Shown one piece after another: positions 61,678 to 64,000 of a stretch of DNA of 64,000 bases. The stretch lies in the sequence record NC_015251.1; one strand, given 5' to 3'. How positions within the stretch are numbered: the first letter of the stretch is position 1; the number at the start of each line of letters is the position of its first letter. Made by a program: the position numbers and the translations under genes. The notes beneath the pieces are model-generated. The model was given only the letters and a program-made list of their open reading frames with translations, was not told the DNA's origin and searched no databases.

Positions 61678-62634
61678 TTATGATTCACGCGCATTAGTCA
61701 ACAGAAGTTTTGACTTAATCTTAGTGATTTGGTTCTTACGACCTCGCCAATGTTTACCACACTTGACGCACTTATATTGTTTGAATTTGCTTACTTCAGT
61801 ATAAGCAAAACCGGAATCCTCAAACTCATGACCACCACATACACATGTGAATTCGTCAGAATCGGTATATAGGGAGAAGTTTGGAAGGCGATCCGACCAT
61901 GGGGAAAGTTTAACATAAAGTTCTTGAAGAGAAACGATATCACCAATATTGTAATCTTCCATTTCTTGCCAAGCTTCCATATTACCAGCCAGACATTCTT
62001 TCCACAGTTCAAAACCTGGGAATTTAGCATGTTTAGATTTCTTAGTGTCACTACACAGTGTATCTGTCATATATTCGAGTTTATTGGAAGTAAATCCGAA
62101 AGTACGCTTTGCAATTTCAAGAGTATCGATATGTTTTACACCTGAGAATGGCTTCATATTATGGAAGATCATACGAGCGCGGATCTTTGGAATATCGAAC
62201 CGCTTACCATTTTGGTGAAGAACAATATCGGCTTCATCCAAAAGTTCCCACAGAACTTTGAGCATATCGGAATCATCTTCTACGTTTTTAGCGTTTCTCT
62301 GGTCCATATAAATGATTTCATCACTATCAAACCATTTTGCTGCAAAACTTAGCATGTACCAATCTTGGTCGATCATGTTCAAACCAACGTTAGTCTTGAA
62401 CAATCGCCATACGTGAGCAAGTACAGGAGCGGTTTCAATATCAAGAACAAGGACTCGGGGACCGGTCTTCATATCATCTACTATATTATTTTCTTCCATA
62501 TAACGTTCGTAATAGTAGTTAACTGAAGATTTAGAAATACCGAGTTCTTTAGCAATTGCACGGGAACCCATACCTTTGCTTTCTTTCATCTCAACAATAG
62601 ATGAGATGACTTTTTCATAGTTGCTAACGGACAT
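61678..62634 (-). CDS. HTH plus RNase H-like (DEDD) exonuclease with a C-terminal Zn ribbon
   Basis: SRAIAKELGISKSSV; LDIET, NGKRFD, HIDTL, NKLEY, YNIGD; CVCG...CVKCG. Confidence 0.9.
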   Translation of the reverse strand: MSVSNYEKVISSIVEMKESKGMGSRAIAKELGISKSSVNYYYERYMEENNIVDDMKTGPRVLVLDIETAPVLAHVWRLFKTNVGLNMIDQDWYMLSFAAKWFDSDEIIYMDQRNAKNVEDDSDMLKVLWELLDEADIVLHQNGKRFDIPKIRARMIFHNMKPFSGVKHIDTLEIAKRTFGFTSNKLEYMTDTLCSDTKKSKHAKFPGFELWKECLAGNMEAWQEMEDYNIGDIVSLQELYVKLSPWSDRLPNFSLYTDSDEFTCVCGGHEFEDSGFAYTEVSKFKQYKCVKCGKHWRGRKNQITKIKSKLLLTNARES

Positions 62635-62740: not shown

Positions 62741-63976
62741 TTAATACGTGAATCCAATAGACTCATTTTTGAAAGCCCCGTTTTTGAATTCATATGTAAC
62801 TTCCTTAATTACATCATAAGTCCAAGTCCGGAGTTTTGCATGGTCATATCCCTCTGGGATAGCAACAACATTAGCTGGGTCAACCTTTACCATGATAACA
62901 CGGTCATTTTCTCTACGGGAATAATATGGAATGTATCCGGCAGATGCAACGTGCAAACCACATGAACACTCATTCTTTCGATCTGCATCTACTTCGAAAG
63001 GTTCCATACGAGGGCTTGCCCCAATAGAGTTATCAAAAGTACCAGTCCAGATATCAGTATAGTCATCACGAATTCGCTTATATGCGAGAAAGTATCCATC
63101 TTCGGTAATTTTGATATCGTTGTGTTTCAGGAAATCAAACAGCTCATATACTGCCTCACGGCGCGGATTCTTAACCAGACGGATAAGGAAGTTGATCATA
63201 GAATCGATATTTTCGCCACTTTTCCACATCTCAACTACACGGCGAGTCATGTTAGTATCTAGAACAACATCTTTATATGTCAGGGTATTACCAATTATTT
63301 TGATATCACCTTTTACATAAGTTTCAATTGCCTTTTTTATGGACAACATACTAGCAGCACGAATAACATCATTCGTTTCTATCAAAATTTTAAATGCTTC
63401 ATCAAATGCTGGGTGTTTACGATCCGCCGTAATAACTTCGCCATCAATATAACAGTTAATGAAATTGAATCCTGCATTCCAAGAAACTTCGGATTTCTTT
63501 TCTTCTACAACATCAACATTTTTAACGTCTACTTTCTTAGGCTTCTGAATCCCTTTATAACGCCGAACAATATCACCAACCGTAGATCGGGGGACCCCAC
63601 TTTGTCTAGAGATTTCATTTTGACTCAGACCGGTTTTATGCAGACGAATAACCTTATCTTCCCGACTTTCTACAACCTGATGCTCATCGACATAACGTTC
63701 TAGAGGGTGTACATAATATTTATATTTAACAATAAGATTGGCGAATTCCCGAATATTAAGATTTGAAATCGCGTCATAATCATCAAAATCGTTTATATGT
63801 TGAAAGTCTGTATCAAGACTTTCTTCAATATACATGATTAATTCTACTACATCCAATCCATCCAATCCAATCCAACCAAGCGTTTTTGACATATCTCGGG
63901 ATGTAACTTTAATTCCTGTTACGTCATATATACCATCATATATAAGATCAAATACAGCTTCATAATTAGTTTTCAT
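62741..63976 (-). CDS. rIIB: rIIB protein with an N-terminal ACP-like domain and an HTH
   Basis: WNAG, NP...V..LFDFL..NDI.ITEDGYF.AYK, DNS.G, CSCGLHV, VKVDP..VV.IP..Y...K.R; aa 1-86 carry GLDGLDVVELIMYIEE. Confidence 0.93.
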   Translation of the reverse strand: MKTNYEAVFDLIYDGIYDVTGIKVTSRDMSKTLGWIGLDGLDVVELIMYIEESLDTDFQHINDFDDYDAISNLNIREFANLIVKYKYYVHPLERYVDEHQVVESREDKVIRLHKTGLSQNEISRQSGVPRSTVGDIVRRYKGIQKPKKVDVKNVDVVEEKKSEVSWNAGFNFINCYIDGEVITADRKHPAFDEAFKILIETNDVIRAASMLSIKKAIETYVKGDIKIIGNTLTYKDVVLDTNMTRRVVEMWKSGENIDSMINFLIRLVKNPRREAVYELFDFLKHNDIKITEDGYFLAYKRIRDDYTDIWTGTFDNSIGASPRMEPFEVDADRKNECSCGLHVASAGYIPYYSRRENDRVIMVKVDPANVVAIPEGYDHAKLRTWTYDVIKEVTYEFKNGAFKNESIGFTY

Positions 63977-64000
63977 TTTATATCCTCATTTAAAGGGGCA

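Follow-up and report, generated by a model that had tools for sequence, protein, structure and literature searches.

A predicted acyl carrier protein-like domain lacking the phosphopantetheine serine at the N-terminus of rIIB in Aeromonas phage 65 and its relatives

The genes rIIA and rIIB are among the most famous in genetics. We analysed a window comprising the right-hand 64 kb of the genome of Aeromonas phage 65 (GU459069/NC_015251), a ~235-kb T4-like phage (Straboviridae, Emmerichvirinae, Ishigurovirus), in which rIIB raises the question of what its N-terminal domain is and what it may add to the protein. The gene occupies 62741..63976 on the (-) strand, has 411 codons and a stop in the list of open reading frames (ORFs), and is annotated as rIIB. 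We found that residues 1-88 (63713..63976, (-)) form an acidic domain (net charge -10) to which AlphaFold2, Foldseek and a profile of the clade assign the fold of a carrier protein, with a glycine at the position of the serine that bears phosphopantetheine in acyl carrier protein (ACP). What is new here is a clade-defining fusion in ~21 annotated Aeromonas phages and metagenomic relatives, which provides rIIB with a lineage-specific serine-less ACP-like accessory module. A literature search on rIIB together with ACP or phosphopantetheine gave only unrelated papers, none of which connected rIIB to a domain of the carrier-protein type. How rIIA and rIIB inhibit RexAB is still unclear (10.1101/2023.05.28.542683).

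We found the rIIB frame (62741..63976, (-)) to be unbroken throughout its 411 amino acids, and the search for a stop or frameshift between the domains revealed none in frame. The initial annotation had seen no obvious internal start, and in agreement with this, no ATG, GTG or TTG codon with a Shine-Dalgarno sequence was found near the domain boundary (residues 89-102). A sequencing frameshift in phage 65 is unlikely, because three records (GU459069/NC_015251/KY290955) from two isolates with names of their own (65 and 65.2) have 100% identical rIIB sequences, and phage avDM6, at 92% nucleotide identity, has the same frame intact. As a whole, the protein is assigned as a bona fide rIIB by its match to PHROG 609 'RIIB lysis inhibitor' (E=7e-103) and by the precomputed family PF26926 Phage_T4_rIIB.

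Taken as a single sequence, the phage 65 N-terminal domain is borderline ACP-like, and its family membership rests on orthologs and fold. The domain alone scored 14.4 bits (E=0.048) against PF00550 of Pfam, below the gathering threshold of 20.8, and matched phrog_5934 'acyl carrier protein' in the PHROGs at E=6.7e-4. A phmmer search of the PDB with this one sequence gave a best E of 0.026, and all 44 matches at E<=10 were ACPs. Relatives were gathered by an exhaustive profile search of 1.84 billion representatives, followed by a full-length search, which brought further rIIB fusions to light. A profile of five N-terminal domains reached E. coli ACP at E=1.4e-4, and a profile of ten orthologous domains reached it at E=1.2e-8 (38 bits); the latter matched 90 PDB sequences at E<=0.001, and all 60 listed among them were ACPs. 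PF00550 was matched by 9 of the 10 domains (E<=0.1), two of which exceeded the gathering threshold (P0051 with 24.3 bits and phage ZPAH1 with 29.5 bits). Database pipelines already mark PF00550 on the ZPAH1 ortholog, and the raw domain match is thus visible. A word-index protein search, which is insensitive, returned only three close relatives of the domain, all within full-length proteins, and none when the 96-residue piece was searched alone.

The nearest NCBIfam models were TIGR00517 and NF002149, which describe the AcpP type of fatty acid synthesis. The phage 65 domain scored 21.9 bits against an equivalog cut-off of 70.45, and the best ortholog, that of ZPAH1, scored 45.5 bits, still below the cut-off. 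These scores indicate that the phage 65 domain is not an AcpP equivalog, and its identity to E. coli ACP is ~26-28% overall.

The AlphaFold2 model of the domain, built from a 5-sequence alignment, had a predicted local distance difference test score (pLDDT) of 84.5 and a predicted template modelling score (pTM) of 0.77, with helices at residues 4-20, 40-54, 67-71 and 75-89. The predicted fold is an ACP bundle. The top 50 Foldseek matches in the PDB were all carrier proteins, with template modelling scores up to 0.77 and probabilities mostly >0.9. In a viral structure library, the matches next after the protein itself were phage 'carrier domain' proteins. By predicted fold and profile, we assign the domain to the carrier-protein superfamily. 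The initial annotation had read an ACP-type domain in frame with the helix-turn-helix (HTH) and the rIIB core, and the unbroken frame, the four-helix model and the ten-ortholog profile bear this out.

We then examined the residue at which true ACPs are modified. The helix equivalent to the 'recognition helix', helix II (63815..63859, (-), residues 40-54), aligns to ACP D35-D51 and was followed by per-column conservation. Its first codon, GGA at 63857..63859 (-), encodes Gly40, which lies within IGLDGLDVVELIMYIEE and pairs with Ser36 of E. coli ACP, the phosphopantetheine-bearing residue, in the HMMER alignments; the replacement of Ser36 by glycine had been read correctly in the initial annotation. 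There is no Ser or Thr in the D-x-L-D motif. Because Gly replaces Ser, the phage 65 domain is predicted to be non-modifiable: it should be unable to carry phosphopantetheine and would not be a functional ACP.

Conservation of the fusion and of the glycine among orthologs, which had been proposed as a check, gave a divided answer: the fusion is kept in every sampled lineage of the clade but one, and the glycine is not conserved. The site holds Gly (GGA) in the 65 group, Asp (GAT) in the CC2 group, and Glu in ZPAH1, P0053, P0055 and P0056 (codon GAA read in P0056). Ser (AGT) is present only in P0051, the sister of the CC2 group, and is absent in 9 of the 10 fusion orthologs examined. The better statement is that the Ser site appears to be under no constraint in the fusion clade. 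For its ancestral state, codon paths slightly favour Glu (GAA), with Ser (AGT) regained in P0051, but repeated loss from Ser is biologically just as plausible. P0051 itself (L021:6001-7206) is a syntenic relative whose N-terminal domain has the canonical G-L-D-S-L-D and passes the Pfam PP-binding threshold; in this protein, rIIB may be joined to a true carrier domain that can be modified. A (TTGGA)n-like run in phage 65, ttggattggattggatggattggat (63851-63880, (-)), which covers the W-I-G-L-D-G-L-D codons, was considered as a slippage tract and rejected. The run is broken up in the closest relatives, L008 and avDM6, and CC2 does not have it; it is probably an incidental result of codon choice.

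The rest of helix II behaved differently from the Ser site. L41, D42, E45, L46 and E51 (ACP L37, D38, E41, L42 and E47) are invariant in the ten orthologs, and D39, M48 and D55 (ACP D35, M44 and D51), together with I75, are conserved in at least 90%. Every N-terminal domain has a net charge between -10 and -18. The acidic face of helix II is the surface by which true ACPs dock on basic patches of client enzymes. Since the Ser site is free to vary while helix II and the charge are kept, the domain most likely has a role in this clade that is independent of the prosthetic group and uses the ACP docking face.

Serine-less relatives were also found outside rIIB. The exhaustive profile search yielded 45 proteins at E<=0.001, mostly ACPs of ~80 residues, and the Ser was absent in 10 of the 45, with D-E/D/A-L-D at the site. 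Three that were looked up (P0019, P0011 and P0048, of the PHROG 5934 type 'acyl carrier protein') are free-standing genes of 80-99 amino acids with no linkage to rIIB. They lie in long, co-directional arrays of small ORFs of early type, on phage-like contigs of 80-190 kb with phage markers (RNase H, N6/N4 methyltransferase, M15 peptidase). The free-standing serine-less genes at L012:6001-6300, L015:5001-5494 and L018:5001-5267 have D-E-L-D or D-D-L-D at the site. Helix II of P0019 (D-E-L-D) is nearly identical to that of the phage domain (LDELDVVELIMYIE), and among 50,697 phage records P0019 matched rIIB N-terminal domains only. On L015, a canonical ACP gene with the Ser comes directly after the serine-less copy P0011. 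These genes indicate that the cofactor-less ACP fold is recurrent and that the module does not need rIIB in order to exist; the domain in the fusion could plausibly have come from a free-standing phage gene. As a separate observation, five other serine-less proteins from the profile search (P0021, P0029, P0036, P0039 and P0040, with D-E-L-D or D-D-L-D) have N-terminal lipoprotein-like signal peptides and are predicted to lie outside the cytoplasm.

The Ser-bearing sequences raise the question of whether the domain is a genuine carrier after all, modified with phosphopantetheine at a different residue, or in those relatives that have the Ser, and carrying an acyl or other group for rIIB function. 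The D-S-L-D of P0051 with its Pfam PP-binding match, and the serine-less copy beside a Ser-bearing ACP on L015, are consistent with this. However, phosphopantetheinyl transferases are specific for the Ser of D-S-L, the phage 65 site is Gly with neither Ser nor Thr in D-x-L-D, and nine of the ten fusion orthologs have no Ser. We regard a carrier function as highly improbable.

To which phages, then, does the fusion belong? The rIIB core had a match in 2,713 phage records, and the N-terminal extension was present in 21 of them, all from Aeromonas phages of ~230 kb: three records of 65/65.2, avDM6, ZPAH1, Aswh_1 and the CC2/AS-zj group. The smaller Aeromonas T4-like phages listed matched from the core onward only. 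A tree built on the rIIB core placed every rIIB that has the ACP-like domain in one clade (support 98/95, and 100/100 in another sampling). This topology shows a single fusion event at the base of the ~230-kb Aeromonas T4-like clade (Emmerichvirinae and metagenomic relatives).

Within the clade the order of the domains has changed. Two metagenomic rIIBs, P0055 and P0056 (L022:6001-7140), have the order HTH, ACP-like domain, core, with no HTH at the phage 65 position; an HTH is present, in either order, in all ten domain-bearing rIIBs examined. P0049, a 305-amino-acid rIIB, was considered as a natural deletion of the N-terminal domain and rejected. Its contig begins 162 nt upstream and encodes the C-terminal half of the domain in frame; because the gene call was cut by the contig end, it is no evidence of loss. 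On a short metagenomic scaffold (L024:1-201), a 95%-identical rIIB contains an in-frame stop that lies within a few codons of the end of the scaffold. It reads 'DIKM-ESREDK' versus 'DIKFVVETESREDK' in avDM6, which creates an ATG immediately in front of the HTH. This may be an artefact of the assembly end, or else a variant from which rIIB could be expressed minus its N-terminal domain.

The layout of the whole protein bears on what the domain may do. The ACP-like domain is followed by a flexible, low-confidence linker (63674..63712, (-), residues 89-101), which is the fastest-evolving stretch. Next come the HTH domain (63539..63670, (-), residues 103-146; HTH_SB E=6.4e-11 and HTH_23 above the Pfam gathering threshold), where T4-type rIIB starts, and the rIIB core (62765..63496, (-), residues 161-404; PHROG 609/3803/36818). 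The full-length AlphaFold model, built from a 107-sequence alignment, had a pLDDT of 86.4 and a pTM of 0.54, with the linkers 89-101 and 150-157 falling below a pLDDT of 50; in this model, three modules are well folded but have no confident mutual arrangement. The only high-probability fold matches of this model were ACPs, and a comparison of the rIIB core with the PDB, by sequence and by fold, gave no credible relative. At the other end of the protein, the rIIBs of phage 65, avDM6 and L008 have a C-terminal tail of 14 residues (KNGAFKNESIGFTY; window 62744-62785, (-), residues 398-411), which has low pLDDT in the model and is missing from the CC2 group and from T4-type rIIB.

We propose, with a probability of about 0.5, that the general mechanism of the domain is that of a cofactor-independent, apo-ACP-like protein-binding module attached to rIIB. 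Carried on the flexible linker ahead of the HTH and core, it would act as a tethered module. Helix II, taken as the working surface, would bind a positively charged partner, and binding would either recruit rIIB to this partner or block it. Candidate partners are speculative: they may include a host client that accepts apo-ACP (the inner-membrane glycerol-3-phosphate acyltransferase or the phospholipid-synthesis complex), a host defence protein, or rIIA. The rII proteins have been reported to be membrane-associated, which would fit an inner-membrane client. The protein-binding module is the best supported reading because the domain hangs on a linker, persists when the domain order changes and can be exchanged, as in P0054.

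Several points weigh against it. The phage 65 domain by itself misses the Pfam threshold, the E-values of the Foldseek matches are weak (none below 0.08), a common situation with small helical domains, and the strong helix II motif may have pulled AlphaFold2 toward an ACP fold. P0051 keeps the Ser, and some lineages may have a carrier role. The rIIB of P0054 (551 amino acids, from a 31-kb Logan contig) nests in the clade and has an unrelated extension of ~240 residues before the HTH instead; when checked for a hidden ACP-like domain, this extension gave none (hhalign probability 0.4), and it had no Pfam hit. The N-terminus of rIIB seems to be a place where accessory modules are exchanged. Thousands of rIIBs function with no ACP-like domain. 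Because P0054 has replaced it and those thousands lack it, the domain is a clade-restricted accessory. Furthermore, the ratio of nonsynonymous to synonymous substitution rates (dN/dS) of the domain is 0.44-0.82 in the 65 lineage, compared with 0.05 for the core; few substitutions underlie this value, which also fits relaxed constraint.

Relaxed constraint leads to the idea of a relic, in which a small upstream phage gene for an ACP-like protein was fused to rIIB by loss of its stop codon, lost its Ser and became a nearly neutral appendage. Besides the 65-lineage dN/dS, the unconstrained Ser site, the replacement in P0054 and the possible stand-alone donors agree with such a history. Other observations argue against it. 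The dN/dS of the N-terminal domain in the CC2 lineage is 0.15 (0.05-0.10 for the rIIB core), and the substitutions in the 65 lineage all fall outside helices I and II. Synonymous divergence between the 65 and CC2 lineages is saturated, yet the domain is kept; it is retained in all sampled lineages but one, and also through the change of order between HTH and ACP-like domain in P0055/P0056. The helix II positions are invariant and the fold is still confidently predicted. We therefore consider a relic improbable. If the domain were a neutral appendage, the result would be an annotation refinement for ~21 phage genomes only.

The initial annotation went further than a binding module and proposed a decoy. 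In its strict form, the domain would compete with host AcpP for clients or ACP-dependent defence proteins and titrate or inhibit them, for example by shutting down phospholipid synthesis. The equivalents of ACP D35, D38, E41, E47, E48 and D51 are all present and conserved in helix II, the nearest family is the AcpP type, and phage-like contigs also carry stand-alone serine-less genes. Glycerol-3-phosphate acyltransferase is strongly inhibited by apo-ACP (PMC3896788), and rIIB proved toxic when expressed in E. coli (10.1101/2023.05.28.542683). However, ACP accounts for ~0.25% of the total soluble protein of E. coli (PMC3896788), so an early phage protein would need a much higher affinity for stoichiometric competition. 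The rIIB of phage T6 triggers a bacterial gasdermin defence system (10.1101/2023.05.28.542683); being of the T-even type without the domain, it is already toxic and gasdermin-triggering, and toxicity is no pointer to the ACP part. Rex protection and the rapid-lysis phenotype are known for T4/T6 only (10.1101/2023.05.28.542683). SpoT, one of the partners first suggested, is a poor candidate, as it does not bind apo-ACP (PMC3896788). The identity to E. coli ACP is low, and no defence system was matched in PADLOC. A strict host-ACP decoy is plausible, though less likely than not.

Another explanation places the partner within the phage. The acidic module might dock on a basic surface belonging to the phage itself, either that of the adjacent HTH, where it would mimic DNA or act as an autoinhibitor, or that of rIIA, and be unrelated to host ACP clients. 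The occurrence of an HTH in all ten domain-bearing rIIBs in either order, the strongly acidic nature of the domain and the position of rIIA, always directly upstream, are in line with such regulation. On the other hand, AlphaFold2 gave no confident inter-domain arrangement (the pTM and linker pLDDT values above), T4-type rIIBs carry an HTH without an ACP-like domain, and the length of rIIA (744-754 amino acids) is like that in phages without the domain. These observations make a regulatory domain unlikely.

For the protein-binding module, we also considered a wider version, in which serine-less ACP mimics, whether fused to rIIB or free-standing in large phages, are a general device for engaging the host ACP-client machinery at the inner membrane (e.g. 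PlsB and the phospholipid-synthesis complex), so that the domain would reveal where rIIB acts. This version is tentative and we hold it to be rather unlikely; if true, it would offer a first biochemical approach to what the rII proteins do, a question that is decades old. Whether or not it holds, the clade appears to be one in which rIIB gained, and kept through rearrangement, an interaction module from a host lipid-synthesis hub, and the partner of this module could point to the cellular site of rIIB. Together, the fusion and the stand-alone copies add a case of phages keeping the ACP fold without the cofactor site.

The surroundings of the gene are those of a T4-like rII locus. A Shine-Dalgarno sequence, GAGGA (63983..63987, (-)), read from the sequence, lies 6 nt 5' of the rIIB ATG at 63976. 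The end of rIIA is position 1 of the record, placing it 24 nt 5' of rIIB across the record junction, which is the T4 arrangement. rIIA is directly 5' of rIIB in every relative examined, and all of these share the order topoisomerase, three small ORFs, rIIA, rIIB and a 318-amino-acid exonuclease. The exonuclease gene, 3' of rIIB (window 61678-62634, (-)), is annotated as a DNA polymerase exonuclease subunit and belongs to the RNase_H_2 family in relatives; its start resembles an HTH by eye (SRAIAKELGISKSSVNYYYERY). It is syntenic with rIIB in all relatives examined, and the T4-type loci of phages VEc20 and PKO111 hold other genes there.

Compared with T4-type rIIB, as represented by VEc20 and PKO111, the HTH and core of the phage 65 protein are orthologous, with 35-36% identity, and both types lie directly downstream of rIIA. 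The difference is at the N-terminus. The T4-type protein (312 amino acids in VEc20) begins with the HTH, which corresponds to residue ~100 of phage 65 rIIB; nothing in it matches residues 1-97. The alignment of VEc20/PKO111 begins at the HTH, in accordance with the initial annotation, which had noted that T4 rIIB has no such domain.

Compared with AcpP (PF00550, TIGR00517), which is the best match in both sequence and fold, the phage 65 domain is alike in its four-helix bundle, its long loop between helices I and II, its strong acidity and its helix II motif D-x-L-D-x-V-E-L-x-M-x-x-E-E, in which the client-docking residues are kept. It differs in having Gly40 for Ser, Tyr for Ala at the position of ACP A45 and diverged helices III and IV, and in being the first domain of a 411-amino-acid phage protein rather than a free-standing one. 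The fold matches include MukB-bound AcpP, the ACP subunits of mitochondrial complex I and the carrier domain of ALDH1L1, in which the ACP fold serves as a binding or fused module. When ACP serves as a structural or binding subunit outside fatty-acid synthesis, several of its contacts require the acyl-phosphopantetheine arm, and the solved ACP sequences aligned here keep the Ser, unlike the phage 65 domain. The closest functional analogy for a serine-less domain may be E. coli apo-ACP. It differs in being the host's own unmodified protein, and PlsB binding by the phage domain is an analogy only, but apo-ACP is active by protein binding without its prosthetic group (PMC3896788), as we propose for the N-terminal domain of phage 65 rIIB.

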